Virus record (IMG/VR): IMGVR_UViG_3300046092_000062 | Location: 124,001 to 188,000 of that record | Strand: one strand, 5' to 3' | Length of the DNA: 64,000 nucleotides | Shown here: positions 17,046 to 54,027 of the stretch, in pieces | Numbering within the stretch: the stretch's first letter is position 1 | Layout of the letters: every line of letters begins with the position of its first letter | Translations under genes and position numbers: made by a program | The notes under the pieces: model-generated | What the model was told of the DNA's origin: nothing | Databases searched by the model: none | Seen by the model: the letters and a program-made list of their open reading frames with translations, nothing else

Positions 17046-17345
17046 ATGAAAGCAGCAGAAATACTACGTGGATTAGCAGACGCCATTGAACGTGCAGAAG
17101 GTGGAGCAGCAACTGTACCACAGCAGGACCAAAGTCCTAAGTTCCATAAAGTGGAAGTACCAAACGACGAGCAAGGTAACCCAACATCAATGCAAGCCCC
17201 GTTACAACAAAAATTAGAATTGTTGAAAAAGGCAGTGGGCGTTGAAAGCACATTTGATGATGAGTGTGCTGACCCGTTAGATCAAATGAAGAAAATGGCA
17301 GGAATTCAAATAGTAGCCCAAGCCGGCGAAGACGCAGGAGAGTAA
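17046..17345 (+). CDS. late hypothetical protein, MKAAEIL leader
   Basis: AAGGA RBS; PLQQKLELLKKAVG. Confidence 0.65.
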   Translation: MKAAEILRGLADAIERAEGGAATVPQQDQSPKFHKVEVPNDEQGNPTSMQAPLQQKLELLKKAVGVESTFDDECADPLDQMKKMAGIQIVAQAGEDAGE

Positions 17346-17349
17346 TACT

Positions 17350-20163
17350 GTGGCGTTAACAAGAAAAGTTAAGTCTGGACTAACACAGGCACCGTTTGAC
17401 ACCTACATCGGCGAGGCCGGACAGATTTTCTTTAGTAACGACACAGGTGAAATTCGTATCAGTGACGGTGTTACCCCAAACGGTAAGCCAGTATATGTTG
17501 CGGTTACTAGTGCTAACATTGGTAACTTGGTCATTACTGGTGCTAGTATCACTACTCTGGGGCTCAACGAAGATTTGGATTTAGTTGCTAGCGGAACAGG
17601 AAACGTAAGCGTATACGGTAGCTTTCATGTTCACACAGATGGATTGGGTAGTACCATTGCCTTTGATGTAGACCCTCAGGGCTTTACAACCATTAACGTA
17701 CCAACATTAACTCTAGGCGACAACGGTTTATTAATTAATGGCGGTAGCATGGTATCAACTGTTCCGCAAGTGGCAGGAACAACCCTACGACTAGTTGGTA
17801 ACGATGGCGTAACCAACACCTTTGCAATCGACTCCTTTGGAACTGGTACGTTCCCGGGAACTATTAACCGTGCAGGTCGTGGCACAAGTGCTACACCTAC
17901 AGCAACAAAAACAGGCGACACCATTGGACGTTGGGGTGCAGTTGGCTACGGCGACACAAACTTTGTAATTGACCAAGGAATCGGCCGAGCAGCAAGTGAT
18001 ATCCGCTTTGTTGCCACAGAAGATTTCACCGACACCAATGGCGGAACACAGATTCAGTTTTACACAAGTCCAAACGGTGGCACACAACGAACATTAAGTG
18101 TGACCATGGACTACACTGGTATTACTACTGGTAATATCCACAGTACTAACGTATTTGTAAGTGGCAACACAATTAGCCAAGGTACCACACAAGCAATTGG
18201 TAACTTTACCTCAAATGGGTCAACTACCTTAATCGGCGATGTGACTATTAATGGCAACGTTAACACCACTGGTGCCACTGCTAACTTTGGCCAAAGCAAT
18301 TTCACAGGTAATGTTAGCGTATTTGGTCCAATGTCTATTGACAACCAAGTTAGTATCACTGCCGCAGGTAATCTTAAATTCAGCGATAGCACTGTGCAGT
18401 CAACCGCAGCTATCCAGGCAATCAACAACAGCAACCACGTTACTGGTTCGTTTAATGCCATTGGTGCCACTAGATATTTGGTATTGCAAACAGATGGTAC
18501 ACCAAATAACACACCAAGCACTCTAGTAGCCCGAGATACTGCTGGGAATATCGCGGTTGGCAACGTTACTGCATCTACATTAAACACCACTAGCGTAACT
18601 GCTAACAGTAGCATTGCTGGTAGCTTGACTGTATACGGTAACTTGAACGTTGTTGGTACAACAGTAACAACCAACGCAGTAGTAACCACAGTTGATACAA
18701 AAACATTTACTATTGCTGCCAATGCAGTTAGTGCCATTGCAGCAGATGGCGCAGCATTTTTAGTGGCCAATATTGCTGGTGCTAGCGTTGCAGACTGGAC
18801 ATACGACAATGCTCAAGTGGCCTGGCGCAGTAATGTAAGCGTTATACCAGCAACTTCATTAAACGGACAAAACCTTGGTAGTACAACACGCGAATGGAAT
18901 CACTTATATGCTGGTGAAGCATACCTTAGTCAGAAACTAAATGTTGGTGTTGTTCCATTAGTTGAGTACCTTAACGTTGCACAGTTTACAGCAAACGTTC
19001 CACAATACAGCCAAGTCTACAATCAAAATTTAAGCAGCAATGCAGGCGCAACCACTGACTTTGTTGCAGCCAACGACATCGGTGGCGAGACCAATAATTA
19101 CATTGACATTGGTATCAATTCCAGTAACTATAGCGAGCCAGCGTACAGCATTCAGTATGCCAATGACGGGTATGTGTTTATAAACGGCGGTAACTTAACT
19201 GTTGGTACTCAATCAACTGGTACCGACATTGTGTTCCACACTGATGGTACCACCGCAGACAAAGAAGCGGGTCGCGTACACTTAGGTCGTTGGATTATGA
19301 CTGGTGCCGTTGACGATGGCGTAACTAAATTCCAAATTGGTGATAACCTGCGAGTAGTTGGCAACGTTACTGCTGGCAACGTGAGTGCAACTAACTTAAC
19401 TAACCAATTTGCTACATTAACTGCAAACGCAGCCGCACAAGCAAATCAAATTACTGGGGCAAACGCAGCTATTGTAACTGCCAACACTGCAATGAAATCG
19501 TATGTTGATGCCGTAACAACTGCATGGACAGCTAACGCAGCTACGCAACAAGTATCTATTAACAGTTTAGTAACTAATGCCAATGCAAATACCGCCGCAT
19601 ATCTATCAAACGGTATTAGTTCTAACATTGTCACCACAGCTAACGTAAGTGCAGGTAACCTTCGAGTTGGAACTACAACCTATGGTAACAATACCATTTA
19701 TAGTTCGGCAACAGCAACCGACATTACAATCGGTCAACTTGGGGCCACTGCCAATTTGGTGCTCAACCGAACTACTACAATCAACAAAGATGCGTACATC
19801 GCTGGAAACGTTTCAACAGTTGGATATGTGTCTGCACAAACCTATCGTGGAAATACTCGCAACGTTGGCACATTGGGCGCGGGTGGTACATTGACTATCG
19901 ACTATGCGACAGATCAATATGTATTTGTTAACATTACTGGTGCTATAACTATTGCTCATACCAATATTATTGCAGGTCGTAATGTTAAAGTTGTGGTGGT
20001 TAACGCAACTGGCACAAACTATGCTGTAAATACCGGGGTAGCAGATATTAATACCACTGGCAACAACGCTGGCGCTAACTTAAACTCAACCCGAATGGGT
20101 GTTTATGAGTTTATTAGTTTTGGTACAACTACAACTACCTTGTACGCTAGTGTCAACAAATAA
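17350..20163 (+). CDS. tail fibre-like structural protein
   Basis: 937 aa rich in G/T/N/A; ISDGVTPNG N-terminus; GNVTAGN repeats; coiled segment. Confidence 0.75.
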   Translation: MALTRKVKSGLTQAPFDTYIGEAGQIFFSNDTGEIRISDGVTPNGKPVYVAVTSANIGNLVITGASITTLGLNEDLDLVASGTGNVSVYGSFHVHTDGLGSTIAFDVDPQGFTTINVPTLTLGDNGLLINGGSMVSTVPQVAGTTLRLVGNDGVTNTFAIDSFGTGTFPGTINRAGRGTSATPTATKTGDTIGRWGAVGYGDTNFVIDQGIGRAASDIRFVATEDFTDTNGGTQIQFYTSPNGGTQRTLSVTMDYTGITTGNIHSTNVFVSGNTISQGTTQAIGNFTSNGSTTLIGDVTINGNVNTTGATANFGQSNFTGNVSVFGPMSIDNQVSITAAGNLKFSDSTVQSTAAIQAINNSNHVTGSFNAIGATRYLVLQTDGTPNNTPSTLVARDTAGNIAVGNVTASTLNTTSVTANSSIAGSLTVYGNLNVVGTTVTTNAVVTTVDTKTFTIAANAVSAIAADGAAFLVANIAGASVADWTYDNAQVAWRSNVSVIPATSLNGQNLGSTTREWNHLYAGEAYLSQKLNVGVVPLVEYLNVAQFTANVPQYSQVYNQNLSSNAGATTDFVAANDIGGETNNYIDIGINSSNYSEPAYSIQYANDGYVFINGGNLTVGTQSTGTDIVFHTDGTTADKEAGRVHLGRWIMTGAVDDGVTKFQIGDNLRVVGNVTAGNVSATNLTNQFATLTANAAAQANQITGANAAIVTANTAMKSYVDAVTTAWTANAATQQVSINSLVTNANANTAAYLSNGISSNIVTTANVSAGNLRVGTTTYGNNTIYSSATATDITIGQLGATANLVLNRTTTINKDAYIAGNVSTVGYVSAQTYRGNTRNVGTLGAGGTLTIDYATDQYVFVNITGAITIAHTNIIAGRNVKVVVVNATGTNYAVNTGVADINTTGNNAGANLNSTRMGVYEFISFGTTTTTLYASVNK

Positions 20164-20232
20164 TCACCAAAGTCTTTGACTTCATCAACATCATAACGTA
20201 TAGTGTAGGACTAAACCCTATAAATATACGTT

Positions 20233-21858
20233 ATGATATTCGGATACTTCACACTCTTAGTTGCACTAGTTATTAGTGCCGTTGCAGAATACTACTCAAT
20301 CGTAGGTCTTACTGCCATCTTCTCCGCAGCCTTTTGGCCCATTGTTATCATGGGCGCAGTACTTGGCGTGGGCAAAATCACTGCCGCAGTTTGGCTCAAA
20401 CTCAATTGGGAACGTGCTAGTTGGACCTACAAGTTATACCTTGTGCCAGCTGTGGCGTTCCTAATGGTACTAACTAGTATGGGCATCTTTGGATTCCTAT
20501 CAAAAGCACACAGTGACCAAAGTCTAGTAAGCGGGGACAGCCAAGCAAAAGTTGCTATTTACGACGAGAAGATTAAAACAGCCAAGGACAATATTGATGC
20601 TAACCGCAAAGTACTTAAACAAATGGATGAGGCTGTGGACCAGAGTATGGCACGCTCAACTGATGAAAAGGGTGCCGACAAAGCCGTTGCAATACGCAGG
20701 GGCCAGCTCAAAGAGCGCCAACGCTTACAGTCCGAAATCGCAGCCGAACAGAAAACAATTAATCAACTTTCTGAAGAACGGGCACCGCTAGCAGCAGAGT
20801 TCCGTAAAGTAGAAAGCGAAGTTGGCCCAATCAAATACATTGCAGCACTAATCTACGGAGACAATCCAGACGCCAACATCTTAGAAAAGGCCGTGCGCCT
20901 AGTTATTATGATGATCGTTGCGGTGTTTGATCCATTAGCCCTTGTGTTAATTTTAGCGGCGCAGCAAAGCCTTAAGTGGGCACGTGGGGAGGAACACACA
21001 CCTGTCGAGGTGAACAAACATACGCAGACTGTTGTTGAGGATAACGCAGTCGGGGAACCACACGAACCCACACCCACTGTAGAAGAACAGTCCGTAGTAG
21101 ACGATTGCGCGGTAGTCGATGCTGAGCACACAGCTCAGAGTGTCTCTACTGAGTCTACCCCTACAGTGGAAGTGGATTTGTTTGCGTATCTAAAGAAACC
21201 CTTTGTGCATTTTTCAAACTTGCCACCAATGGTGTATAAACGAGAAGTTGTTGTAGATGAAGAAGACAACATCCGTCCATTAACCGAGGAGGAAGTAATG
21301 GCGCCGGCTTACGAAGAAGATGATGGCCCGTTAAGTGAAGAACAGGTGGCACAACTTATCAAGTCCGTGGAGGCTTTTAAGCCGGTAACTGAGCCCGCTG
21401 AACCAAAGATCCTGGCAATGGGCATTGACGAAGTTGAACGTCCAGGTGACTACATTACTCCCCCTGAGTACACTGGTCCAATGAAAGAAGTAGTCGAAGA
21501 ACACATTGACCCAAATACTCGTATCAAGACTCTTAGTCATTCATGGGTGCCAGACCTAGATGCACACGCAGACAATATTGATCGCGCTAAAGCAGCCAAC
21601 GCAGACTTTGGAACTAAGTTTCCAGAATCTGCAACCAAAGGTGACATGTATCTGCGTGTAGACTTCTTGCCAGCTAGACTGTTTAAGTTCAATGGCGTTA
21701 AATGGATTGAAGTTGACAAAGCAGCAACTGATAGCTACACTTACAATGAAGAATACATCAAGTACCTAATTGACAAAATCAACAGTGGCGAATACGATGT
21801 TGAAACACTAAGCGAGAGCGAACAAGAGCAGATTCGCGAATATCTAAAGAACAAATGA
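20233..21858 (+). CDS. multi-TM membrane protein with periplasmic coiled coil and acidic tail
   Basis: 3 N-terminal TMs, coiled coil, VFDPLA TM; TATAAATA at 20219. Confidence 0.7.
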   Translation: MIFGYFTLLVALVISAVAEYYSIVGLTAIFSAAFWPIVIMGAVLGVGKITAAVWLKLNWERASWTYKLYLVPAVAFLMVLTSMGIFGFLSKAHSDQSLVSGDSQAKVAIYDEKIKTAKDNIDANRKVLKQMDEAVDQSMARSTDEKGADKAVAIRRGQLKERQRLQSEIAAEQKTINQLSEERAPLAAEFRKVESEVGPIKYIAALIYGDNPDANILEKAVRLVIMMIVAVFDPLALVLILAAQQSLKWARGEEHTPVEVNKHTQTVVEDNAVGEPHEPTPTVEEQSVVDDCAVVDAEHTAQSVSTESTPTVEVDLFAYLKKPFVHFSNLPPMVYKREVVVDEEDNIRPLTEEEVMAPAYEEDDGPLSEEQVAQLIKSVEAFKPVTEPAEPKILAMGIDEVERPGDYITPPEYTGPMKEVVEEHIDPNTRIKTLSHSWVPDLDAHADNIDRAKAANADFGTKFPESATKGDMYLRVDFLPARLFKFNGVKWIEVDKAATDSYTYNEEYIKYLIDKINSGEYDVETLSESEQEQIREYLKNK

Positions 21859-22235
21859 CAACTAACTTTATTACCCCGCCGGATTTTGTAGAAGATCCAA
21901 ATCATTCAGTATTGTTAATTGACGTTGATCCAGTTGACGTTGAAACATTGGCATTTTTATGTGCAGGGCATAACGAAGCATTTAACGTGTACCTTTACAG
22001 TGCAGAATTAGATGACGTTAATTGGCTTACTAAGGCAGCAGGGCAAGTAGATGCAATCGTAGTAAACACCGCAGCCACTGATCTAAGTCCAATCAAAGAC
22101 CTATTTGTTGGGTCAGAAAAAACATATCATTACGGGCCAAAGAACTTTATCAATAATGATCGTAAATACACTAACGTATTAGAATATTTTATCAAAAGAG
22201 CCCATGAGCGAAACCATTCAACCGATCCACTGTAA
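21855..22235 (+). CDS. hypothetical protein
   Basis: ATGA overlap; FITPPD. Confidence 0.65.
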   Translation: MTTNFITPPDFVEDPNHSVLLIDVDPVDVETLAFLCAGHNEAFNVYLYSAELDDVNWLTKAAGQVDAIVVNTAATDLSPIKDLFVGSEKTYHYGPKNFINNDRKYTNVLEYFIKRAHERNHSTDPL

Positions 22236-23406
22236 CTTCTGTGGTAAAAGCCGCAACGAAGTTGAAAAGTTAATTGTAGCCAATGACGCGGGCATTTGTA
22301 ATGAATGTATCACGCTTTGTAGCAACATCATTAACAAAGAAGCCAACGATCATATTCGCAAGGATAAGAAAATTGGCAAGGCACTTGATCCAATTAAAAT
22401 CAAACAGCACTTAGACGAATACATTATCGGCCAAGACGCTGCAAAGATTGCAATTAGTGTGGGAGTGGTTAATCACTACAAACGCATCTTCTTTGAAAGC
22501 TCAGTGGAACTAGAAAAGTCGAACATTCTAATTCACGGCCCAACCGGCTCAGGTAAAACACTGCTGGCCAAAACAATCGCACGTTATCTAAACGTGCCCT
22601 TTGTTGTAGCAGATGCCACTACACTAACCGAAGCAGGATACGTAGGGGATGATGTTGAAAGTATTATCTCAGGCTTGCTAGCAGCAGCAGAATACGATGT
22701 TGCTCGTTGTGAGCAAGGTATTATCTTCCTAGATGAAGTGGACAAGATTGCACGTAAAAGTGAATCAGCTAGTCTAACCCGCGACGTAAGCGGTGAAGGT
22801 GTACAGCAAGCTCTACTCAAGCTAGTAGAAGGTACCAAGTGCAAGGTCAGCGTAAATGGTGGTAAGAAGCATCCAGCAATGGATCAAGTGGAAATTGATA
22901 CTAGCAAGATCTTGTTTATTGCTGGAGGCGCATTTGCTGGACTACCTAAGATTGTTGACCGTAGACAGCGTGGAACCAGTATTGGATTCAACTCGGCTAA
23001 CGAAGATCAAATCGACGTTACAGAAGTGACCCCAGACGATTTCCAAAAGTTCGGAATGATCCCTGAGTTCACAGGACGTTTCCCAATCTCTGTACAAATT
23101 GACGAACTAAGCAAGGATGACTTTGTTAAGATTCTAACTGAACCCAAGAACAACTTGCTTGCACAGATGAAGTTTTACTTCTCCTCAGACGAAGTGGAAT
23201 TAATGTTTACACTGGAAGCCATTGAAGCAGTGGCTGACTTGGCAGTGCAGCAAAAGGTTGGAGCTCGTGGACTAAAGAGTATTTTAGAGCGTACTCTTAC
23301 ACCATATATGTACACCCTAACTGAAATTAAAAAGCAGGGTTTTAAAAAGATAGAGATTACTGACAAAGTGGTTAAATATAACGACCCACCTAATTTTATA
23401 GAATAG
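22204..23406 (+). CDS. clpX: ATP-dependent Clp protease ATPase ClpX
   Basis: C4 Zn finger, [12 protein letters not shown] pore loop, DEVDK, IGF loop, GARGL. Confidence 0.97.
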
Positions 23407-23413
23407 GATAAAA

Positions 23414-23647
23414 ATGAACGAAAGAATGAAACTTTATGGCAGCAGCGTAGTTGTGCAGAACGACAACGTTGAAAAAGCCTTACGCAAATTTAAAAAGAAA
23501 ATCATGGAGAGCGGCAAGTTGCAAGAACTTCGCGAACGTGAGTTTTACGAAAAGCCAACTACCAAGCGTAAGAAAGCAGCGGCACAAGCCAAGCGCCGCT
23601 GGCAAAAGAAACTGCAAGCAGAGAGCTTGCCAAAGAAACTGTACTGA
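23414..23647 (+). CDS. rpsU: 30S ribosomal protein S21 (bS21)
   Basis: VEKALRKFKKK...REFYEKPTTKRK. Confidence 0.92.
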   Translation: MNERMKLYGSSVVVQNDNVEKALRKFKKKIMESGKLQELREREFYEKPTTKRKKAAAQAKRRWQKKLQAESLPKKLY

Positions 23648-29648: not shown

Positions 29649-29963
29649 ATGTCTAAATACCTTATTGCTCTCTGTCTTGCTCTAGCATGTGCTGCATCGT
29701 ATGCACAAAAACCAGTGGAAACAAACAAGAAGATTGTGTGCTTTCCTGTTAAAGTCCTAATGAAGGATCTTAAAGACAAGTACGGCGAAGAACCAATGGT
29801 AATGGGCACAACTTCAAATATGAGCGACGTTGCAATGGCGTTGTACCTTAATAAAGAAACCGGCTCATTCACTATTATTGAGTTTGACAGCGAAGCAGCT
29901 TGCGTTATTAGCATCGGTAAAGATGTGCGTTACCGTTTTCCCAAGACCGGAACGATGCTATAA
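29649..29963 (+). CDS. secreted hypothetical protein
   Basis: Signal peptide; C...YGEEP...N.ETGSFTIIE...AC..G. Confidence 0.7.
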   Translation: MSKYLIALCLALACAASYAQKPVETNKKIVCFPVKVLMKDLKDKYGEEPMVMGTTSNMSDVAMALYLNKETGSFTIIEFDSEAACVISIGKDVRYRFPKTGTML

Positions 29964-29970
29964 ATACTAG

Positions 29971-30510
29971 ATGCGTATTACAGAAGTTAGCCTGCCTAAA
30001 AATCTATGGGAATTAGTTGTATCCAATGCCGATAAGCAAGAGCTTGGGGACAATTTAATTGATCTAGTTAACAACGCCTACGGTTCTACTGCACACGGCA
30101 GTTTCGTTACTAGCATTAGAGATGTTATTCCAAGCGACTGGAACGTCATTGACTGGGATGAAGATCCTGAAGTTGATGCGTGTGTATTTTATCGTGGACC
30201 TAGGGCAAACGAGCAATGGGTTGGGTATAAGATCCAAGGCATCGGGCACGATGGGCAAAAACAAAGCAAAGACCGTGTGATAAACAAAGTGACTCAGTTG
30301 CTTAACAAGCCAGGTTTCTGGATTGAAAGTAGTGATGCTATGCGAGCAACCCTAAAGCGTTTACCAGTACCAATGGTAGACAGCGAACACTTGCTGAAGT
30401 TCTTATTCAATGATCCGCATCTAAAGATGGTTGACCATGGAACCTACCAACGCAAGCTACAAAGCGGCATGGCAATTGAAACAGTATTCGGAAATCCACG
30501 AATAACCTAA
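29971..30510 (+). CDS. late protein with MRITE leader (possibly GNAT-like)
   Basis: TATAAATA at 29959-66 just before ATG. Confidence 0.65.
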   Translation: MRITEVSLPKNLWELVVSNADKQELGDNLIDLVNNAYGSTAHGSFVTSIRDVIPSDWNVIDWDEDPEVDACVFYRGPRANEQWVGYKIQGIGHDGQKQSKDRVINKVTQLLNKPGFWIESSDAMRATLKRLPVPMVDSEHLLKFLFNDPHLKMVDHGTYQRKLQSGMAIETVFGNPRIT

Positions 30511-33898: not shown

Positions 33899-34085
33899 AG
33901 TCAAGTGGTTTAGTGCCCAACGAGGGTACGGATTTATCATTGCATACCCATCGTTAGATGAAGTGTTTGTTCATTACACTAACATCATTAGCGATGGATT
34001 TCAAGTACTAACAAAAGACCAGCTAGTGGAATTCACCATTAGTAATGGCAGGGCTGCAAACGTTACTAAGATCAGTTCAGAGTAA
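33888..34085 (+). CDS. csp: cold-shock domain protein
   Basis: GKVKWF, RGYGFI, VFVHY, V.F, AANV. Confidence 0.9.
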   Translation: MLGKVKWFSAQRGYGFIIAYPSLDEVFVHYTNIISDGFQVLTKDQLVEFTISNGRAANVTKISSE

Positions 34086-34476
34086 CTTTTGGTTCTGGGC
34101 CAAGCCAGCGTGTGTCACGCATAACTGTGCGTAACTGAAACTTGTTCTTGCCCATCTTAATAAACGGGATATTCAAATTAGTGTGCGGATCATAGAATAC
34201 TAAGTTAGTACCGTCAGGCTTTGCTCTGAACAAATGCAAGCCTCTATTAATGATTCGACCAAATGTGTCAATTAACATACCAGGCTCGATCCTACTCATA
34301 CCACGTTTAGCCAGTAACTGATCAAAGAAATGGTCTTTAATATCTAATCGTATGCCAATATGATTTGCATAGTCTTGCACAGCCTTAATCGATAGGTACA
34401 ACGAGCGAGTGCGCTCTTCTGTGTAATAGGGATCTTGCGGCCAATCGCTATGCTCAAGTAATTCTTTTATTTTCAT
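34072..34476 (-). CDS. late protein with MKIKE leader, putative RNase-like domain
   Basis: HFFDQ...R...I, D..TNLNIPF, RTVMR. Confidence 0.55.
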   Translation of the reverse strand: MKIKELLEHSDWPQDPYYTEERTRSLYLSIKAVQDYANHIGIRLDIKDHFFDQLLAKRGMSRIEPGMLIDTFGRIINRGLHLFRAKPDGTNLVFYDPHTNLNIPFIKMGKNKFQLRTVMRDTRWLGPEPKVTLN

Positions 34477-35171
34477 ATGGTTCCTAGTACGTCGTGATAC
34501 CAAGGGTCAATGATAACTGGCGTACCATCTGCACGTTGCATAACGTTTTCTGTATGCAAGTCCCATCCCCAACCTTTATGTGCGCCTAGTCTAGCTAGAA
34601 TGACCATAGTAATGTACAGGGCTTCGTAGTAGCTTTGCTTACGATGGTCCATGAACTCGTTATGCACTAGTTCCGGAACATCAGGATCGCCGCCCCAGTA
34701 ACGCCAGAGATCACTTTCAGTCATGAAGTCATCTAATACCTCTTGCCATCTGAGTTGACGGGCAGCACACTCACTCATAATCCAAACAATACCTTGTAGC
34801 GCAGTACCAGCTGGAATAGGTTGCAAGCGTTCCATGGCAATTTGTCTAAACTGTTCGCCGTCGATCTCGAAACGTGTATGGTGTTGCCCTTGAATCTTAA
34901 CAAATCTTGGCAAGAATGGATTTGGCTTGCTAGTGGTTACGTATTGATAAAAGTCCAGGAATGTCTTTTCACCTGTACTTAACTGTCCACTCTCTGGCAT
35001 AAGGATTTTAATCACAGTGTGAGCGTCTTTTGCATAGACTGAAGCGTCTGCGCCTGCGCCCAACTCAGTATATCCCGCAGCCTTCATTACTTGCTCAATC
35101 TTGTCACGGTGATCACTAGTGATTAATTCATCAAGTACTTGGGCTTCTGTTAAAATTTCGTTTATTTTCAT
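34473..35171 (-). CDS. Ser/Thr protein kinase-like protein with MKINE leader
   Basis: LGAGADASVY Gly loop, VIKI, MERL, DLHTENVM catalytic loop, IIDP. Confidence 0.8.
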   Translation of the reverse strand: MKINEILTEAQVLDELITSDHRDKIEQVMKAAGYTELGAGADASVYAKDAHTVIKILMPESGQLSTGEKTFLDFYQYVTTSKPNPFLPRFVKIQGQHHTRFEIDGEQFRQIAMERLQPIPAGTALQGIVWIMSECAARQLRWQEVLDDFMTESDLWRYWGGDPDVPELVHNEFMDHRKQSYYEALYITMVILARLGAHKGWGWDLHTENVMQRADGTPVIIDPWYHDVLGTI

Positions 35172-36325
35172 CGCATGTTCATCGCTACAGTGTACTCTTT
35201 GAAGTTGTGCAAGCGATCTTGCAGTCCTCTGAGCGCAGGGTTAATATATTTAGTGACCGTGGCAGTGTCATTGAAGTTGTGTACGTTAGGTCTAACGCGA
35301 GTTTGCCAATACCACACTGCAATCTTGGCAGCAATTTCTGGGTTAGCAGCAAGCTCTGGCTTTTGCTCTAACGGCAACCCTAACGCTTTTCCTGCCATGC
35401 GATAGTTGTCGCGTCCGGTGATTTGAATAAAGCCACGACCGTGATACCTAACTCCGTCCCCTGCATGTGTATTGCCCAAGGTCTTAGCCATACCCGGTGC
35501 AGCCTTGGGGTCGTAACGCTTGTGGAAGTACTTGGCGCCGCCGATCTCCTTCATTCGTGTAAAATCTGCACTTTCGTGACGTGTTTGTGCCATGAATTGT
35601 GCTAGTTCTGCCCCTTTAATGCCTGCTCTGATAGCAGTACGTTGTAGAGTATGCTCGGGCCCCATATTCATACTCACCCCAAATGTGTCTGGTTGTGCTA
35701 CTTTTGGAGTTGCTACTTTAGGTTGTGCAGCTTTGGCTACATGGTGTGCTGTTGCCTTAGGTTGTGCATGTGGCGCAGATTTAGCATCAGCTGCGCCACC
35801 ACCTAACGCCATGCCCGCAGCAAGTGCGCCAGTAGCAGCCCAGTCTTTCCATCCCTCTTCAAGATCTTGTGCAGAATAAATGGCATCTAGTGCATCGTCT
35901 AGCTGTCGCAACGGAATTCCTGCGTTGTTGTATCCGCGTTCCAATCGAGCAATATACGCATCGTTTGGTTCTGTGCCTTGCATGTACTCACGAGTCTCCG
36001 GAGTCATTGTATAGATCTCTGCTTCGTGGCGCTTTCCATTGGCAAATACTGGAACTGTTTTGCGATCGTATAAACTTGGGTAGCCCTCTGTTTGGTCCAG
36101 TTGAGCAAGTAGCTGTCTATCGATTGCCCACAAGCTACCAATTACTCTAGCTCCGGGATATGGAAATACGTTGGCATAAGTGAACATTTCAAACACAAAG
36201 TTCTTTAGCTCTGCACGACTAACAAATTCTGCACCGGGCATCAGTTCTGGGTCTGTTAACATGCCGTAGGCAAAATAGTATATAGGGGCCGCGCCAGCTT
36301 CGTCTAGTACATCTGTGATTTTCAT
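35168..36325 (-). CDS. gamma-glutamylcyclotransferase (AIG2-like) fused to a GH19 lysozyme/chitinase
   Basis: YFAYG, LDQTEGYP..Y (GGCT); FMAQTRHES, YHGRGFIQITGRDNY (GH19). Confidence 0.85.
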   Translation of the reverse strand: MKITDVLDEAGAAPIYYFAYGMLTDPELMPGAEFVSRAELKNFVFEMFTYANVFPYPGARVIGSLWAIDRQLLAQLDQTEGYPSLYDRKTVPVFANGKRHEAEIYTMTPETREYMQGTEPNDAYIARLERGYNNAGIPLRQLDDALDAIYSAQDLEEGWKDWAATGALAAGMALGGGAADAKSAPHAQPKATAHHVAKAAQPKVATPKVAQPDTFGVSMNMGPEHTLQRTAIRAGIKGAELAQFMAQTRHESADFTRMKEIGGAKYFHKRYDPKAAPGMAKTLGNTHAGDGVRYHGRGFIQITGRDNYRMAGKALGLPLEQKPELAANPEIAAKIAVWYWQTRVRPNVHNFNDTATVTKYINPALRGLQDRLHNFKEYTVAMNMR

Positions 36326-36332
36326 ACTGTAT

Positions 36333-37454
36333 TTAGTAAGCCAATATACGGTTTAAGTTCTGCAAGTCTGCAGGGTTGTAGGGAATGTTGCACTCAGTTA
36401 ATGCGCTACCTAGTTTGTCTGTTAACTCGTTTACTACCAGTGGACGCATGGTAGTATAAAAGTGGTTAAAGTTGTATTCTAATATTTCAGCCATTGCTAA
36501 TTTCATTTGCACCAGTTCTTCGTGCGTTTTATTACATAGATCTTCAAGTATAGCTAGCACCGCATCAAAGCGATCGGCACTGTTAGTAATAGTGTCGTAT
36601 CCCTCGTCCCAGAATTCCCCAAAGGTACGAAAGCCATACTTGCGCAAGTACGCCAAATTGCCAGCGCCAGCTAACAACAAAAAGGGCATCTTAGCCACAA
36701 TCGGCTTAAAGATCTTTTCAGTTAGATGTTGTTTATTTTCGTAGAAGATGGTTTCAGTAACTAGATTTACAAATGCCTTTTGCATATCCGCAACATTGAC
36801 CGCTGCACTAAGCTCTCCGCGTGGGTCGCTGGTGTCTATTATCATCTGCTTTTCAAGCAGGTGCATATGAGATCGAATGTTTGTTTTGTGAGGTTCTGGT
36901 AGCCATTGGTACGAGTTAGTAGAAGCCTCAATACTTTTAACATCAGCTGTATTGTAACTCACATATCCTTTCCCTACTAGATCTCTTTTCTGCAATTCGA
37001 TTACCAAGTTGGCGCGGTACAAACGTTTGTCTAATGTTAGATTGTTATAAGTAATATATGTGCGTTCAAAATCGGTATTGACATTTATGTTGTCGTACCA
37101 ATGCAATCTATACCATTCGTGACACAACAGTGCGTGATAAAAATACTGGACATCTTTCAAATTGTAATCATTACACAGTTTGTCGCTTTCTGTGCTATAC
37201 TCACTGGTTACTAGTACCCGACAAGCTGAAAAAGATTGAGAATACGATCTATAGAGTTCAATGTAAAATTTAGTAACGTCTATAGGTTCTTGGTCATAAA
37301 AAATAACAGTAGGTTTAAGTACAATCGGATAAGACGTCGATTTTGAAACAAAGTATATACGATTTTGATTAAACACAGGACACAATAACGCAATGCCCGA
37401 TTTATCAAAAAAGTGATCTCTCATTACATTATAGAAAAAATCAAAAGGAATCAT
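36333..37454 (-). CDS. putative glycosyltransferase-like protein
   Basis: LVTET, TEKIFKPI, GFRTF..FWDE.YD; paralogue of 43074-44165. Confidence 0.55.
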   Translation of the reverse strand: MIPFDFFYNVMRDHFFDKSGIALLCPVFNQNRIYFVSKSTSYPIVLKPTVIFYDQEPIDVTKFYIELYRSYSQSFSACRVLVTSEYSTESDKLCNDYNLKDVQYFYHALLCHEWYRLHWYDNINVNTDFERTYITYNNLTLDKRLYRANLVIELQKRDLVGKGYVSYNTADVKSIEASTNSYQWLPEPHKTNIRSHMHLLEKQMIIDTSDPRGELSAAVNVADMQKAFVNLVTETIFYENKQHLTEKIFKPIVAKMPFLLLAGAGNLAYLRKYGFRTFGEFWDEGYDTITNSADRFDAVLAILEDLCNKTHEELVQMKLAMAEILEYNFNHFYTTMRPLVVNELTDKLGSALTECNIPYNPADLQNLNRILAY

Positions 37455-46374: not shown

Positions 46375-46375
46375 T

Positions 46376-47613: not shown

Positions 47614-48195
47614 ATGAAACGTATTTTATCAATTGCCGCAATCGCCCTGATCATGACAGGCTGTAGCTCAACCCGTGACCCGTACGAGCGCCGTGCAGAA
47701 GAAGTGCGTGAACGTCAAGAACGTGTGGTTAAGCAAACCATTAACGAAGCTCCTGAGTGGATGACTAAGTTGCCTAAGAGCACCGATGCAGTATATGCGT
47801 CTGGTACTGCAATTTCGGGGGACTTTAACATGGCCAAGGACATTGCGGAAACCAACGCATTCCGACAAATTTGTATGGCAGCAGGTGGTACAGTGCGCAG
47901 CCAGACTAAGGTGTTCCGAGTGGACACCGAAAGCACTAGCAACGCAATTAACACCACAGCCATTAAAAGCATGTGCCCGGACGTTGATGTAACTGGTACT
48001 GAAATCCGAGAGATTAAGGTGATTGAAAGCCAGGGCCGTTTCCGAGCTTATGTGTTGGTTGCACTCCCAATGGGCGAAGCTAACGTAATTGCCCGTACTA
48101 AGGAACGAGATCGTGCAGCACGTGGTGCAATGGCCCGAGCAGAGCGAGAGTTCAAAGAGCTTGATGCAACAGTATCTACAGTAAAGAAAGAATAA
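47614..48195 (+). CDS. LPP20-like lipoprotein
   Basis: MTGC lipobox; PEWM, YASGTA, AYVLV. Confidence 0.75.
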   Translation: MKRILSIAAIALIMTGCSSTRDPYERRAEEVRERQERVVKQTINEAPEWMTKLPKSTDAVYASGTAISGDFNMAKDIAETNAFRQICMAAGGTVRSQTKVFRVDTESTSNAINTTAIKSMCPDVDVTGTEIREIKVIESQGRFRAYVLVALPMGEANVIARTKERDRAARGAMARAEREFKELDATVSTVKKE

Positions 48196-48210
48196 ACGCT
48201 GTAGATTACG

Positions 48211-48252
48211 AGCCCCTGGGCGGTAGTTAAATACCGTAACCAGGGGCTTTTC
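48211..48252 (+). terminator. terminator hairpin with TAAATA late promoter in its loop
   Basis: AGCCCCTGG...CCAGGGGCT TTT. Confidence 0.7.
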
Positions 48253-48253
48253 T

Positions 48254-48748
48254 ATGGCAAGACCGAACCCGATACGCAGCATTATGGCAGTACCACTGCC
48301 CAGCATAACGTACCAACGTAGAAAGCAGTTTCGTCCAAATGAAATGGACGTTCTATACGCATATAACATTATCAATCGTTATGTGTTTGATGGAGTACTA
48401 ACCCGCCCTCAAATCACACTTGGCGGAATACGCAAATGCTGGGGCCTGTGTAGTTGGTTAACTAAAGAGCAGCACAACGGCAGCTGGTGCGATATTAGAC
48501 TAGTCCCGAACTGGTTTTGTCAACAATGGTTCATGAACACTATTGCACACGAAATGGTACATCAGTATCAATGGGATGTGTACCGTTGGGAACTAGCAGA
48601 AGACGGTCGCCAAATTTACATGAACAGTGGCGCACATGGTCCTAGCTTCTATATGTTCCGTGATCGCTTTGAGCATTACGGCTTAAACTTAAAAATCTCT
48701 TTTGGACAAAAGCGTTGGTTTAAACACCAAAATTTTAGCAAATGTTAA
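48254..48748 (+). CDS. SprT-like zinc metalloprotease
   Basis: HEMVH, HG..F. Confidence 0.85.
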   Translation: MARPNPIRSIMAVPLPSITYQRRKQFRPNEMDVLYAYNIINRYVFDGVLTRPQITLGGIRKCWGLCSWLTKEQHNGSWCDIRLVPNWFCQQWFMNTIAHEMVHQYQWDVYRWELAEDGRQIYMNSGAHGPSFYMFRDRFEHYGLNLKISFGQKRWFKHQNFSKC

Positions 48749-48796
48749 GGTAATCCTGTTATAATAGTTGCTCAACAACTAACTAACAGGAATCTA

Positions 48797-49420
48797 ATGC
48801 CTAACTTTGTACCTACCGTACTCGAAAAAACTGCCAACGGCGAACGTGCTTACGACATCTATAGTCGTTTGCTTAAAGATCGTATTGTCATGTTGGACAC
48901 GGATGTTAGCGAGCATTCCGCTAGTCTCGTTATTGCACAAATGCTCTTTTTAGAAAGTGAAGATCCCAATGCAGACATCCTCTTTTACATCAACTCACCC
49001 GGCGGTCTCGTCACTGCTGGCCTGGCAATCTATGATACTATGCAGTTCATTAAGCCTGATGTTTCTACCATTGTACTTGGCCAAGCCTGCTCTATGGGAA
49101 GTTTCCTTGCCAACGCAGGAGCCCCGGGCAAACGACTAGTATTGCCAGAATCACGTACAATGATTCACCGTGTTAGCTCGGGCACTCCTAGCACACGTGG
49201 TAGCGTACACGTTCAAGAACTGCAATTTGAAGATGCTAAACGCAGCTTTGAAGAAAGCCAACGCTTGAATCAACGCCTTACTGAGCTGTACATCCGTCAC
49301 AACACTGCGGGCAAAACATACGACGAAATGTTTGCTACTATGAAGTTTGACACATTCCTGTCTGCACAAGAAGCAGTGGAAATGGGTCTTGCTGATGAAG
49401 TGATCTCTAAACGTCCATAA
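48797..49420 (+). CDS. clpP: ATP-dependent Clp protease proteolytic subunit
   Basis: DIYSRLLKDRI, YINSPGG, GQACSMG, MIH, D.FLSA.EA...GL.D. Confidence 0.96.
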   Translation: MPNFVPTVLEKTANGERAYDIYSRLLKDRIVMLDTDVSEHSASLVIAQMLFLESEDPNADILFYINSPGGLVTAGLAIYDTMQFIKPDVSTIVLGQACSMGSFLANAGAPGKRLVLPESRTMIHRVSSGTPSTRGSVHVQELQFEDAKRSFEESQRLNQRLTELYIRHNTAGKTYDEMFATMKFDTFLSAQEAVEMGLADEVISKRP

Positions 49421-49731
49421 TGGCCGTATTCAACGTTACTCCCAACATACTCGGGTGGGCTCGCGAGTATGATCCTTTTTTCCGCGGCTCTATCAGCAGT
49501 GCATTGGCTCAAATCGAAGACTGGCTAGAGGAGAATGTTGGGGAGTACTGTGGCCCCGGTAATGACGGCTTTAACGACAATGTTATTTCCATTGGCTATG
49601 GGTGGGAAGTATTCTCCCTGTACAACGGAAAGCCCGAACGTCCCGATCATATGGACGCAGAAGTAACATGGCACGTTGACATTAGCGATGAACACAAAGC
49701 CGTATTATTCGCATTGAAATGGACAAAGTGA
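49420..49731 (+). CDS. hypothetical protein
   Basis: WLEENVG...DEHKAVLFALKW. Confidence 0.65.
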   Translation: MAVFNVTPNILGWAREYDPFFRGSISSALAQIEDWLEENVGEYCGPGNDGFNDNVISIGYGWEVFSLYNGKPERPDHMDAEVTWHVDISDEHKAVLFALKWTK

Positions 49732-49802
49732 CTCAGTAGAAACCATGAGATAATGTTGCATTTCAGTATAAATACTAGTACACTCACTAGAAGGAAACTG
49801 AA

Positions 49803-49955
49803 ATGCAATTATTACAATGGATCAAAAGTCTATTTGCTGCACCATCTTACCAAGATGAACTAGACAGCTATGTCACAAGCAAGCACCCAACTACCACTAC
49901 AGAAGTCGAGCACTGGATTCGCCAGTACGACTCACGCAAGGGGTGGTCACTATGA
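49803..49955 (+). CDS. DUF3563-like small protein (50 aa)
   Basis: MQLLQWIKSLF..SYQDELDSYV.S.....EVEHWIRQYD; TATAAATA at 49767. Confidence 0.6.
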   Translation: MQLLQWIKSLFAAPSYQDELDSYVTSKHPTTTTEVEHWIRQYDSRKGWSL

Positions 49956-50041
49956 AACTGTTAAATACAATATGGGAGTTCTTAGAGCAGTGGGGCGAGT
50001 ATCGCTACCAGCTATCAAAGAAACACGGCTTCCGCTATTAA
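49952..50041 (+). CDS. 29-aa amphipathic peptide
   Basis: ATGA overlap; MKLLNTIWEFLEQWGEYRYQLSKKHGFRY. Confidence 0.5.
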   Translation: MKLLNTIWEFLEQWGEYRYQLSKKHGFRY

Positions 50042-50042
50042 C

Positions 50043-50606
50043 ATGATCACTTACCGAATTCTATCTGCGCCTGAGTTACCAAAATACGCTATGTTTCTAA
50101 AACAGCGTAATTCCGATTCCCTTAACCTTTATTTCGGACACGCTATGCGCCACGAAATGATTGATCATTTAATGGACGGAATGATTGCAGATGCACACTT
50201 GCACAATATTGTGGTAGCAGAAGATATTGATCAAGAAATTGTGGGCACTGTGCATATTGCACGTATGAGCGACCACGAAGTAGAGTTTGGTGTAATGGTA
50301 GCAGAAGCATATCGCAGCAAGGGCATTGCTAGTGGTATGATGGATTATGCTATGACATGGGCACAAAATAGAGGTTTTAGAGACCTTTACATGCACTGTT
50401 TGAGCTATAATGCACCCATCAAGCACCTTGTTACCAAGCACGGACTCGCTATCAGCAGAGACGGAATCGAAAGCGATGCCCGTGTTACTATGCCTCCTAC
50501 TAACATCTTTAGTATTGGGCACGAAATTGCCCTGCGCCAACAGAACGCAGTTAACACAACTCTTAACCACACAATTCAAAGTTTTCGTCGAGCGCTAGCG
50601 TTATAA
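50043..50606 (+). CDS. GNAT acetyltransferase
   Basis: EFGVMVAEAYRSKGIAS (motif A), CLSYN. Confidence 0.88.
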   Translation: MITYRILSAPELPKYAMFLKQRNSDSLNLYFGHAMRHEMIDHLMDGMIADAHLHNIVVAEDIDQEIVGTVHIARMSDHEVEFGVMVAEAYRSKGIASGMMDYAMTWAQNRGFRDLYMHCLSYNAPIKHLVTKHGLAISRDGIESDARVTMPPTNIFSIGHEIALRQQNAVNTTLNHTIQSFRRALAL

Positions 50607-50616
50607 ATACGTTACC

Positions 50617-51534
50617 GTGAAAACATTTGAATTAAACAACTCTTACTCAGATCGCCCTGTTGTCTATGTAGATATGGACGGTGTCCTTGCGGACATGTTC
50701 GGCGAAGCTGCCCGTCGTGAAGGTGCAACGCATTGGCGTAGAGCACGTAAAGAAAAAGACTGCATTGATCAAGTCGCACAAGAACCTGGATTCTTCGCTG
50801 AATTGCCAGCATTACCACAAGCAGGTAAACTGCTACATGGTGTGCTGAAATTAGCCGGTGAGTACAGTATCTTATCTGCTCCGCTAATGAGCGATGTGGA
50901 ACAAAGCAGTAGAGAAAAAGCTGACTGGATTGATCGCAAGCTATCTAGAATCCCTCCCGAAAGCATTATCTTTGATCACCAAAAGGAAAAGTTTGCTAGA
51001 CAAGCAGATGGTACTCCTAACATCTTAATTGATGATTGGGATAGCAATATCAAGCTATGGGAAGCCAATGGCGGCATTGGTATCTTGTACAAAGATGGCG
51101 AGTGTGAGCGGGCTTTAAAGAAACTGCACTATGCACTAGAGGGCTTGATCCCTGCTAGTGAAGTAGAAGACGAAGATGTTGACCTAAGCGTAGAAAACAA
51201 ACTCTACACCAATCAGCAGGTGCTCAAGTATGTTAAAGGCATACATAATGAATATCATTTAGAAAAGCCAATTCTGCGACACAAGGTGTGGGTGCTTAAA
51301 GAAGTCCCACTAAGTGAGTTGCAGACTCCAGAGTTCTACGATCAAGACGATCCTTACCGCAGAGTAATCGACTTGGACTGGGACCACATCAACAATGTTA
51401 CAACCCGTGATATTTTAAAGAAGCCCGTAGTTGCAGACAGCAACGGGTGGTTACTAGATGGCAACCATAGGGTTACAGCCGCTAGAGCCAAGGGCTTGCA
51501 AAGCATCCGAGCATTAGTTCCGTACCAAGATTAA
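50617..51534 (+). CDS. HAD 5'(3')-nucleotidase fused to a ParB/Srx-like domain
   Basis: DMDGVLAD, LIDD (HAD); LDGNHRV.A (ParB-like); acidic linker. Confidence 0.85.
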   Translation: MKTFELNNSYSDRPVVYVDMDGVLADMFGEAARREGATHWRRARKEKDCIDQVAQEPGFFAELPALPQAGKLLHGVLKLAGEYSILSAPLMSDVEQSSREKADWIDRKLSRIPPESIIFDHQKEKFARQADGTPNILIDDWDSNIKLWEANGGIGILYKDGECERALKKLHYALEGLIPASEVEDEDVDLSVENKLYTNQQVLKYVKGIHNEYHLEKPILRHKVWVLKEVPLSELQTPEFYDQDDPYRRVIDLDWDHINNVTTRDILKKPVVADSNGWLLDGNHRVTAARAKGLQSIRALVPYQD

Positions 51535-51567
51535 TAGTGCGTATAAATACCTAATACAGGTATTTTT

Positions 51568-54027
51568 ATGCGCTATAAACAAATCAAAACATTAACAGAA
51601 CAAACATTATTTGAAGTCAATATGAGCCCAGGCAGCTTGCGTAAACTCGCAAGTCAGATCAATGCCAAGGCTGGTATGGAATTTGAAATGATTGTTCCTA
51701 ACGTCAAAATTGATGGTGAAGAAGATTTTGAATCGGAACCCGACTACGAACATGACCCACGCACACGCAGCATCAGCGACATTCGTGATTTCTTCCACGA
51801 TGGTGATCATAACGGACGCCGTGCAGTTGATGAGCTAGTAGAAGAATTAGAACAAGAATTCTACGAGTGGCGCCAAACGAAAATTGACGAAGAATGGGCC
51901 AGTGACGGTTACGAGTTCTTTTCCCAATGGGTTAGAGAAAACGTCAGCGACGATGAATGGCTAACCGGCGATGATGAAGACGACGAAAATGAAGCGTTTT
52001 CCAAATATATAGATCGCGAATGGGAATCACAAGACCGTGCTTACACAGAAGCATACAATGAATTTGTTTCTGACCACGAAGACGATTGGGATAGCGGCGA
52101 TTGGTTGAATGCAGTTGATTATGACTACATGACCGACATTGCCAACAACTTTGATATCAGCTGGCCTTATTGGACAGAATATCAAGGGGACGATGATAAC
52201 ATGGATGTAGAGAAGGTTGCTGATGATTTTAGCAACGCAATCGGTCGTCCAGTTAATCACAGTACCAGCTACCATGGCGCACGCCGAGAAGAAGGCACAT
52301 ACGTAGTCGAACCCGATGGCAGCTTAGAAGGTGACGATAGCGATGATGGTGGTTTAGAATTTGTTAGCCCACCATTGCCTATTGCAGAATTGCTAAGTGA
52401 CTTGCAGAAAGTTAAACGTTGGGCCAAGCGTAGAGGTTGCTATACAGGTAGCGATTACGGCACAGGCCTGCACATTAACGTATCAGTTGATGGTTGGAAA
52501 GGGCTTGAGAGTTTAGACTACGTTAAGCTAGCAATCTTACTTGGCGACGAGTACGTGCTAAAGCAATTTGAACGACAAAGCAATACCTATTGCAAGAGTG
52601 CGTTGGGACTAGTTAAAAACGCAATCAAGCAGAATCCTCTAAGTGCCAAAGAGCTGCTAGAGAAGATGAAGAACCACATGAACACTGCGGCCAGCAAGTT
52701 GATCCACAGTGGTATCACCAACAAGTTTACTAGTATCAACACCAAAGACGGTTACGTAGAGTTCCGCAGTCCGGGCGGTGATTGGTTAGATGAATTTGAA
52801 GACAAAATTGAACCTACGCTACTACGCTTTGTGGTTGCATTGGATGCAGCAGTACACGAAGACAAGTACAAACAAGAATACCAAAAGAAGTTGTATAAAC
52901 TACTAGAGCCAAGCATGGACGAATATGGTGCAATGGTTAAAGACTTCAGTGACTACGTAAGTGGTGTCGGTGGTGCTCCTGAACAAGTTGTTAAAGACTT
53001 TAGACGTGCAGCATTGTCTAAACTGCAACAAAGTAACGTAGGCAAGAAGTCACAGCGCAATGAAGGCAACTGGGGCTTGTGGGCAAAAGTTCCTAACAGA
53101 TTCGCCGCATTGAGTACAGACAAGGACAGTGCGTTACGTAGATTTAAATCTAAAGAGGACGGTGAGGCATGGATGGCTAGTCATGGGCTAAAGCCAGAAC
53201 GTTTTGACGTTTTAGAAATCCCAGCTGATTATGTACCCTCTGAGCGAAATGTCAATACGTTCCAAGAGCCAACTGCTAACCGCGGCGACTTAGTTCCACG
53301 TGGTCCGGGTCCATGGGAAATTTACAGAATAAGCGATGGTAGCAGTGTAAGAGCATTAGATCAAACTAACCGCAACGGAGCTGAAACCGAAGCGAGAACT
53401 GCATTAGGGTTGCGTGCCGAAGCTCCTGAGTTATACGGAGTACGTACTCGCCAATCAGCACAACAGCCAAATTGGGAAATTCGAAACGCAAGTACCAATG
53501 GTTTAGTGGATCAGTTTTATGCACCCGACCAGAATACGGCCATTGGCATACAGTTTGATTACTTACAAGATCAAGGACTAGATTCAAATGATTACGTGCT
53601 TCAAGCTATCGAGCAACCTAGTGCAGCACAAGTAGCACAACAGTCGCACAATGCTCATCAAGCAGCAAACATGCAAGAGTGGACTATCTTAAATGGCCAG
53701 GGCGCAGTGATGGGCAGAGTGCAAGCTGCCACACAAGGTGAGGCTAATCAACGTGCAGCCGGATTCCTTGGCAGACACCATCCCAACATGATGGGGCAAG
53801 AAGTTGAGGTAGTACCGACCGCGGCGCACAATGCTAGACAACAAAGTCAAGCACAGCCTCAGCGATTTGAAATCTACAAACGAAGCACAGGTCAACCTGC
53901 TGTTGAATTAACTAGCACTAATCAACAAGATGCATGGCTCGAAGCACAAGAGATGTTTAGAACTCGTTATGCCGCTTACGACCCAGCTGAATATAGCGTT
54001 AGAGCTGTAACTCCATCTATCCCGTAA
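51568..54027 (+). CDS. putative amidoligase (COOH-NH2 ligase type 2) with C-terminal repeats
   Basis: GMEFE, EPDGSL, LEFVSPP, TGLHINVS, VEFRSPGG. Confidence 0.8.
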   Translation: MRYKQIKTLTEQTLFEVNMSPGSLRKLASQINAKAGMEFEMIVPNVKIDGEEDFESEPDYEHDPRTRSISDIRDFFHDGDHNGRRAVDELVEELEQEFYEWRQTKIDEEWASDGYEFFSQWVRENVSDDEWLTGDDEDDENEAFSKYIDREWESQDRAYTEAYNEFVSDHEDDWDSGDWLNAVDYDYMTDIANNFDISWPYWTEYQGDDDNMDVEKVADDFSNAIGRPVNHSTSYHGARREEGTYVVEPDGSLEGDDSDDGGLEFVSPPLPIAELLSDLQKVKRWAKRRGCYTGSDYGTGLHINVSVDGWKGLESLDYVKLAILLGDEYVLKQFERQSNTYCKSALGLVKNAIKQNPLSAKELLEKMKNHMNTAASKLIHSGITNKFTSINTKDGYVEFRSPGGDWLDEFEDKIEPTLLRFVVALDAAVHEDKYKQEYQKKLYKLLEPSMDEYGAMVKDFSDYVSGVGGAPEQVVKDFRRAALSKLQQSNVGKKSQRNEGNWGLWAKVPNRFAALSTDKDSALRRFKSKEDGEAWMASHGLKPERFDVLEIPADYVPSERNVNTFQEPTANRGDLVPRGPGPWEIYRISDGSSVRALDQTNRNGAETEARTALGLRAEAPELYGVRTRQSAQQPNWEIRNASTNGLVDQFYAPDQNTAIGIQFDYLQDQGLDSNDYVLQAIEQPSAAQVAQQSHNAHQAANMQEWTILNGQGAVMGRVQAATQGEANQRAAGFLGRHHPNMMGQEVEVVPTAAHNARQQSQAQPQRFEIYKRSTGQPAVELTSTNQQDAWLEAQEMFRTRYAAYDPAEYSVRAVTPSIP

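Follow-up and report, generated by a model that had tools for sequence, protein, structure and literature searches.

All internal proteins of bacteriophage T4 dock via a capsid-targeting sequence (CTS) (PMC5694885). In IPI, IPII and IPIII, the CTS is a 9-10-residue N-terminal tag, M-K-x-x-(Q)E-Phi-Phi-x-E (Phi, hydrophobic residue), which is carried by unrelated late proteins, ends in Phi-x-E, the consensus of the prohead protease gp21, and is removed by that protease. T4 Alt, a packaged and injected ADP-ribosyltransferase, is cleaved at ITE-6 (PMC5694885). Head ejection or inner-body proteins of phiKZ and SPN3US carry N-terminal propeptides cut after Glu, at S/A/G-x-E, by S80 proteases (PMC5694885), and for the polyvalent proteins of phages and conjugative elements, which can fuse several domains in one long protein, packaging and injection have been predicted (Iyer et al. 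2017, PMC5512222). Here, we analyzed a 64,000-nucleotide stretch of a jumbo phage genome (the window), bases 124001-188000 of one 320,767-bp IMG/VR viral contig (IMGVR_UViG_3300046092_000062; CheckV 92% complete), in which unrelated proteins begin with a leader of about nine residues, M-[KR]-I-x-[ED]-Phi-Phi-x-E. We propose that this leader is probably the clade's own form of the capsid-targeting propeptide of T4 and that the proteins bearing it would be packaged in the head, cleaved and injected.

Like the CTS of the T4 internal proteins, the leader is a short N-terminal tag that ends in Phi-x-E on unrelated proteins, and genes for a gp21-family protease, a scaffold and a Gp23 capsid protein are present in this phage too. 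It differs from the T4 tag in being one residue shorter (MKIxEIIxE) and in having two tandem Phi-x-E units. The putative cargo also differs, consisting mostly of enzymes of 130-800 amino acids (aa) rather than small basic inhibitors, as does the scale: a genome holds about 13 members, and the clade of ~350-kb Rak2/PA5oct-like phages has at least 43 families of putative cargo. In the T4 genome (NC_000866), we read MKTYQEFIAE at the start of ipII and ipIII and MELITELFDE at the start of Alt; MKINEIITE and MKITDVLDE are similar to these in pattern, homology being unprovable for a 9-mer. The T4 hypothetical gene 61.1 (54 aa, NC_000866 18966-19130) starts with MKTFKEFIKE, close to ipII and ipIII. 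As in phiKZ and SPN3US, many head-internal proteins would carry N-terminal propeptides cut after Glu, but those phages represent another lineage and protease subfamily, their propeptides are long and heterogeneous with a small P3 residue, and they have no short shared leader with Phi at P3. The mechanism is classical, and the leader would be a further example of the T4 capsid-targeting-sequence type. We found no paper describing it: a search with the leader string returned nothing relevant, and a jumbo-phage review and a comparative-genomics paper are silent on the tag.

A nucleotide search of the window against GenBank phages gave no match. The major capsid protein (MCP) is 63-69% identical to the MCPs of Vibrio phage 2.275.O, Sinorhizobium phage Phosso, Pseudomonas phage PA5oct, Pectobacterium phage CBB and Cronobacter phage GAP32, and these identities identify the phage, at the level of its capsid sequence, as a Rak2/PA5oct-like jumbo myovirus with a T4-type head. 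Relatives chosen via a non-structural gene (RAS14, Xoo-sp13, XacN1, RsoM2USA and Mosig) had few or no leaders, and were set aside; the MCP instead groups the phage with Rak2, PA5oct and GAP32. The annotations around the leader genes of XacN1 and RsoM2USA held no virion information.

The leader motif and the proteins that carry it

The 477 genes of the contig were called with a home-made hexamer model and a Shine-Dalgarno (SD)/promoter rule, not with Prodigal, and the start of g199 was set by hand. A genome-wide scan covering every start codon found the strict leader at 7 of 477 called N-termini, or 8 with g199, compared with 0.03 expected from internal sequence composition. None of the 1827 internal methionines carried it. 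After M-[KR], the leader reads as one Phi-x-E unit following another; the family form is M-[KR]-I-x-[ED]-[IVLF]-[IL]-x-E, and the endings are IITE, ILTE, VLDE, IILE, ILRE, IIVE or FITE. The shorter M[KR]-Phi-x-E was present at 10/477 N-termini (1-2 expected). Including near variants, the genome holds about 13 leader proteins, 10 of them outside the window (genome coordinates):

genome 31276, + strand, g030: MRINEVITE, gp0.7-like kinase, paralog of g199
genome 112333, + strand, g127: MRINSILSE, 800 aa, LysM
genome 115487, + strand, g129: MKIFEILRE
genome 116503, + strand, g130: MKFSFINMLTE, DUF6267
genome 119473, + strand, g135: MKIVELLNH
genome 120864, + strand, g138: MRFAEIIVE
genome 158072, - strand, g198: MKIKELLE, in the window
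genome 158473, - strand, g199: MKINEILTE, in the window
genome 159168, - strand, g200: MKITDVLDE, in the window
genome 240925, + strand, g370: MKITEIILE, DUF6321
genome 249158, + strand, g382: MFIAEMFTE, cytidylyltransferase-like
genome 250740, + strand, g384: MKTTDFITE
genome 297500, - strand, g455: MRINEIITE, GNAT

Beyond the leader, g030 and g199 are the sole paralogous pair among these proteins. A degenerate DNA pattern for the leader gave 3-10 matches per genome in five genomes (this one and four complete relatives), and a reversed-pattern control gave 0. Leader variants were lineage-specific, such as MRAxEF..E in one related contig (G015).

The original prediction attributed a common MKIxE/D leader to seven genes of the window, starting at 17046, 29971, 34476 (-), 35171 (-), 36325 (-), 50617 and 51568, and all seven N-termini are present there (window positions, here and below, unless marked as genome):

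35168..36325, - strand, g200: 385 aa; leader MKITDVLDE, GGACT domain at residues 17-148, GH19 domain at 237-349
34473..35171, - strand, g199: 232 aa; leader MKINEILTE, then a T7 gp0.7-like protein kinase
34072..34476, - strand, g198: 134 aa; leader MKIKELLE, one residue below canonical, then a compact domain
29971..30510, + strand, g192: 179 aa; putative truncated leader MR-ITE, then a GNAT-fold (acetyltransferase-like) domain
51568..54027, + strand, g223: 819 aa; N-terminal extension MRYKQIKTLTEQTLFE, VNMSP block, Amidoligase_2 domain at residues 212-405
50617..51534, + strand, g222: 305 aa; NT5C/HAD 5'-nucleotidase with a GTG start, MKTFEL, behind a putative late promoter
17046..17345, + strand, g175: 99 aa; MKAAEILRG

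The leader is canonical in the three minus-strand genes, at 34476, 35171 and 36325. The weaker candidates were judged via orthologs collected by whole-protein similarity, which gave support to 29971 and 51568 and none to 17046 and 50617. Orthologs of g192 (n=20, 50-66% identity) start with either a full leader (MRASEFITE, MRYSDLITE or MRAEEFLFE) or a short one (MR-ITE or MR-LHE), the two forms differing by a 4-residue indel within the leader. These orthologs support the membership of g192 in the family, its start appearing to be a truncated leader that keeps I-T-E. In the AlphaFold2 (AF2) model of g192, residues 1-14 have a predicted local distance difference test (pLDDT) value below 50, and its top Foldseek matches are all GNAT acetyltransferases. 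All g223 orthologs have a variable extension of 9-20 residues that ends in Phi-x-E directly before a conserved [IV]NMSP, with junctions (marked by a slash) such as LFE/VNMSP, LAE/INMSP, LNE/INMSP and LVE/VEMTP, and one ortholog has the canonical MRANEFLVE. The g223 extension is probably a degenerate, longer propeptide, with Phi-x-E at LTE11 and LFE16.

For two genes, membership was not supported. Orthologs of g222 start with MKSFELE, and the canonical form occurs in none of them. Those of g175 start with MKAAEILRKLADVID, never canonically, and the conserved N-terminal helix is leader-like over its first 7 residues only.

The cargo domains named in the original prediction were found in part. 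A GGACT (gamma-glutamyl cyclotransferase-like) domain and a GH19 (muramidase/chitinase-like) domain are present, both in g200, as are NT5C/HAD, Amidoligase_2 and the gp0.7-like kinase; the last was assigned by phrog_15752 (E 1.8e-7), and g199 shares 31% identity with its paralog g030 outside the window. The "RNase-like" label given to g198 was unsupported, as a Foldseek comparison of its model with the PDB returned nothing at E <= 0.001, and neither Pfam nor Atlas returned anything for the "ParB/Srx" domain placed in g223. The g198 model itself has a mean pLDDT of 90.8, with residues 1-9 below 50. The invariant residues of the g198 domain are H49 and R58; a locus-level search found no relatives, and an exhaustive search of representatives gave 31.

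Across the genome, the proposed cargo comprises two gp0.7-like kinases, two GNAT-like proteins, the GGACT-GH19 protein, the 800-aa LysM protein and the amidoligase, together with a cytidylyltransferase-like protein, a DUF6267 protein with a KxDG motif, a DUF6321 protein and several proteins of no assigned domain. The KxDG motif of the DUF6267 protein (g130, genome 116503-117621) reads SIKWDGG and resembles motif I of ATP-dependent ligases and capping enzymes. Between its GGACT and GH19 domains, g200 has a Gly/Ala-rich hydrophobic segment (residues ~162-181). The LysM protein (g127, genome 112333-114735) also has such a segment, at residues ~143-173. These segments raise the question of whether the two proteins may insert into or cross a membrane.

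Position, portability and promoter linkage of the leader

The leader lies outside the folded domains. Pfam domains of leader proteins start at residues 13-28, and in other phages the leader is found on the same domains in other settings. Among the first 23 of the 31 g198 relatives, which were found without reference to the leader, 16 start with it, with junctions such as MKINEIILE/HSDW, MKITDIINE/HSDW and MKATEFVSE/HSDW. In fusions in which the g198 domain is C-terminal, the leader heads the whole protein and not the domain (P0008, MKVNEILKE; P0010, MRAEEYLTE). GH19 homologs in other contigs have different N-terminal regions, yet they start with MRATEFITE, MRAIEFIIE or MRLRELFEH. A scan of IMG/VR for M[KR]IxEIIxE returned matches in more than 120 stretches at least, nearly all of them at the starts of open reading frames (ORFs). 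With the leader masked, 73 leader proteins among the matches listed fell into at least 43 unrelated clusters, almost all of them from contigs of jumbo phages. In its choice among synonymous codons, the leader resembles the gene bodies, so it is the peptide rather than the RNA that is under selection. The leader is thus an N-terminal-only element that is portable between unrelated proteins.

The same domains connect these proteins to polyvalent proteins. GGACT, Amidoligase_2, the g198 domain, nucleotidyltransferase and DUF6267 are fused in single long phage proteins elsewhere: a 1010-aa protein (P0009) joins the g198 domain to GGACT and Amidoligase_2, and another (P0029) joins it to an HxGH nucleotidyltransferase and DUF6267. 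Because of these fusions, the separately tagged proteins of this phage would correspond to modules of polyvalent-type proteins. A weak Kinase-PolyVal match was also found. Unlike in polyvalent proteins, for which a CTS-like tag is not described, the modules here are separate genes, each with its own leader.

Many of the listed IMG/VR matches lie 4 nucleotides (nt) after ATAAATA or just past a conserved adaptor-like gene whose product ends in PMTWVTG before the stop. In this genome, that gene is g029 (phrog_211, "head-tail adaptor Ad2", genome 30374-31270), and its homologs in many IMG/VR contigs have a leader gene of varying identity directly downstream, which suggests that the position is a hot spot for the exchange of cargo genes. 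Some IMG/VR leader proteins contain a Tat-like twin-arginine motif. In L043 (MRINEIITEDMSRRGFLGALGAGA), it follows the leader, and removal of the leader would put it near the new N-terminus. In L014 and L019, an internal SRRGFLGGL... precedes the GH19 domain.

Leader genes are associated with a TAAATA element, as had been predicted. TAAATA stands upstream of all seven listed genes, directly or via short or overlapping gaps, and chains behind TAAATA contain 11 of 13 leader genes compared with 116 of 464 other genes (Fisher p = 1.6e-5). The elements next to leader genes in the window are as follows:

36330..36335, - strand: TAAATA, 4 nt upstream of the g200 ATG, no SD
29961..29966, + strand: TAAATA within TATAAATA, 4 nt upstream of the g192 ATG
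51544..51549, + strand: TAAATA within TATAAATA, 18 nt upstream of the g223 ATG

The first of these heads an operon, g200-g199-g198, whose genes are joined by ATGA overlaps. Genome-wide, the + strand has 125 copies of TAAATA and the - strand has 51, with peaks 4 and ~19 nt before gene starts, and two geometries can be distinguished. In about 17 genes, TAAATA(C) precedes the start by 4-7 nt and there is no SD (in the window, 29961-29971, 36325-36335 (-) and 50604-50619), an arrangement that would imply late mRNAs that are leaderless or nearly so. In about 30 genes, an AGGA-type SD is present and TAAATA lies 17-25 nt upstream. Six of the ten TAAATA-headed genes tested encode virion structural proteins (tail tube, fibre, spike and virion proteins).

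Head machinery and virion proteins

The leader co-occurs with T4-type head machinery. The genome encodes a prohead protease of the T4 gp21 family (PF03420, Peptidase_S77; E 5.6e-27, genome 811-1449), a coiled-coil scaffold with many Phi-x-E sites and a Gp23 major capsid protein (PF07068, E 1.8e-98). BLASTP aligned L40-S41-E42/S43 of this capsid protein on L63-T64-E65/A66 of T4, the LTE65/A that we take to be the gp23 maturation site. PF03420 was found on 9 of 15 long leader-positive contigs; five of the six contigs without a match are 27-55% fragments, and the sixth is G014 (IMGVR_UViG_3300043418_000072), the closest complete relative. For 11 fragmentary contigs, dividing length by CheckV completeness gives a whole size of ~350-370 kb in most cases and of about 190 and 460 kb for the outliers.

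The contig begins inside the head module, and the portal gene and a small post-portal gene are absent from it. In seven related phages or contigs, the small post-portal gene has a leader-like start in five and a degenerate one in two (G004 and G013):

PA5oct EST35_0150: MKINDIITE
Vibrio phage 2.275.O: MKLVELFEA
CBB_253: MLDEIFEA
G014 (closest relative): MFITELFDG
G015: (V)KLFEMFDEA
G004: MILRELFY, degenerate
G013: MKATELNP, degenerate, keeping the first part only

The G014 post-portal start, MFITELFDG, can be likened to the MELITELFDE of T4 Alt, as can MKITDVLDE of g200 and MR-ITE of g192. Like Alt, a large host-modifying enzyme with an N-terminal propeptide, several proteins here are enzymes behind such a start; their catalytic domains differ from that of Alt, being kinase, GNAT, GGACT-GH19 and amidoligase, and the leader proteins examined included no ADP-ribosyltransferase. 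Two of the three PA5oct leader proteins, EST35_0150 and EST35_0238, are marked "structural protein, ESI-MS/MS" in GenBank.

Both this contig and G014 break inside or beside the head module (portal, post-portal and core genes), and the breaks may stem from an acidic repeat region or from terminal repeats. Far from the capsid gene, two small ORFs (136-138 aa; genome 209020-209205 and 210593-210673) have above-threshold matches to short pieces of the Gp23 profile.

Proposed packaged effectors and other explanations

In the model that we favor, proteins made late from TAAATA promoters would be attached by the leader to the scaffold core while the prohead assembles. During maturation, the prohead protease (gp21-type, Peptidase_S77) would then cut the leader off after a Phi-x-E glutamate, and the mature cargo would stay in the head with the DNA and be delivered to the next host at infection. 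The modular address tag put forward in the original prediction is thereby kept as the best-supported reading of a leader that is N-terminal-only, disordered, portable, linked to putative late promoters and accompanied by a gp21-type protease; two of the seven genes are dropped from it. Remodelling of host proteins, nucleotides and wall before phage gene expression, also put forward there, may follow by analogy with T4 Alt and internal proteins and with polyvalent proteins.

Several points weigh against packaging and injection. Docking, cleavage, retention in the virion and injection are steps that we infer from the sequence of an uncultured phage. For PA5oct, two of three leader proteins set beside 93 of 461 proteins detected by mass spectrometry (MS) (PMC7318152) give p ~0.1, a weak support; the MS list includes non-structural enzymes too, and the third leader protein, EST35_0271, is not marked as detected. 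G014, rated 100% complete, gave no PF03420 match, which is probably a contig-end effect, as this contig starts at the post-portal gene. The strict pattern had no match in the close MCP relatives Vibrio phage 2.275.O and GAP32, and the leader is therefore lineage-variable. Two single-sequence search methods gave no credible match to T4 gp55 in the genome, so the presumed late status of the promoters rests on their T4-like, TATAAATA-like TAAATA motif and their association with structural genes. Finally, g200, a peptidoglycan hydrolase with a hydrophobic segment, could be a lysis protein instead.

This last point belongs to the main alternative, in which the leader is a tag for the prohead protease or for assembly and the cargo is not injected, comprising either transient core parts that are degraded and expelled or enzymes activated late in the producing cell, for example GH19 and LysM proteins in lysis. 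The leader does head the small post-portal core gene as well, gp67, gp68 and gp22 of the T4 core are processed to fragments that exit the head (PMC5694885), and g200 and g127 pair wall-binding or wall-hydrolysing domains with hydrophobic segments. We nevertheless consider this alternative unlikely, given that EST35_0150 and EST35_0238 of PA5oct are annotated as structural proteins detected by MS and that the cargo is mostly of host-modifying types (kinase, GNAT, amidoligase and nucleotidyltransferase), which are fused in polyvalent-type proteins elsewhere and suit delivery better than scaffolding.

Two further explanations, which do without a targeting function, fit poorly. The leader could be a translation-initiation feature, with AAA as codon 2 and A/T-rich, unstructured early codons on late mRNAs that lack an SD and are leaderless-like or translationally coupled. 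Many members indeed have no SD and start 4 nt after TAAATA or overlap an upstream stop (ATGA, TAATG), and M[KR] starts are common in general (91/477). But what is conserved over the 9 codons is the amino-acid sequence, with K/R encoded by AAA, AAG, AGA or CGA and with Ile and Glu codons in gene-body proportions; most other genes 4 nt after TAAATA lack the motif (MKQIF, MKTIQ, MTKKL, MSKAL, MRNLI), g382 and g384 carry the leader despite an ordinary SD, and the motif ends in the protease consensus Phi-x-E, all of which makes a pure translation signal very improbable. T-even internal-protein loci are known to swap genes behind a common leader, and the N-terminal likeness might be a by-product of recombination, with the promoter and first codons serving as a gene-swap cassette and the peptide having no function; the position that many leader genes share after the adaptor-like gene ending in PMTWVTG would agree with this. 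Between members, however, the leader and upstream DNA are unconserved and only the peptide is conserved, members stand behind differing upstream contexts, and the peptide is kept, in lineage-specific variants, across contigs whose orthologs are only 50-66% identical. We therefore give a functionless cassette hardly any credence.

Taking the leader as a capsid-targeting propeptide, a wider proposal can be made more tentatively. The leader might be a clade-wide, sequence-readable address code for the packaged and injected proteome of uncultured ~350-kb jumbo phages, comprising dozens of unrelated families, many of them enzymes, that are delivered as separate tagged proteins in place of fused polyvalent proteins. 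The subset in which a Tat-like RRGFLG directly follows the leader could even, once injected and cleaved, be exported again to the periplasm. This proposal is possible, but we would not yet call it likely.

If the leader acts like the T4 CTS, its 9-residue pattern would be a cheap predictor of capsid-carried, injected proteins in a large and mostly uncultured group of jumbo phages. Packaged proteins are of the anti-defence and host-takeover class, which is hard to find by homology. The list obtained here is dominated by enzymes and by folds without a known match, and its members would be ready candidates for early host manipulation. The same reading would relate effectors encoded as separate genes to the polyvalent fusions seen in other phages. 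A second, diverged tag would also become available with which foreign proteins could be targeted to large phage heads.

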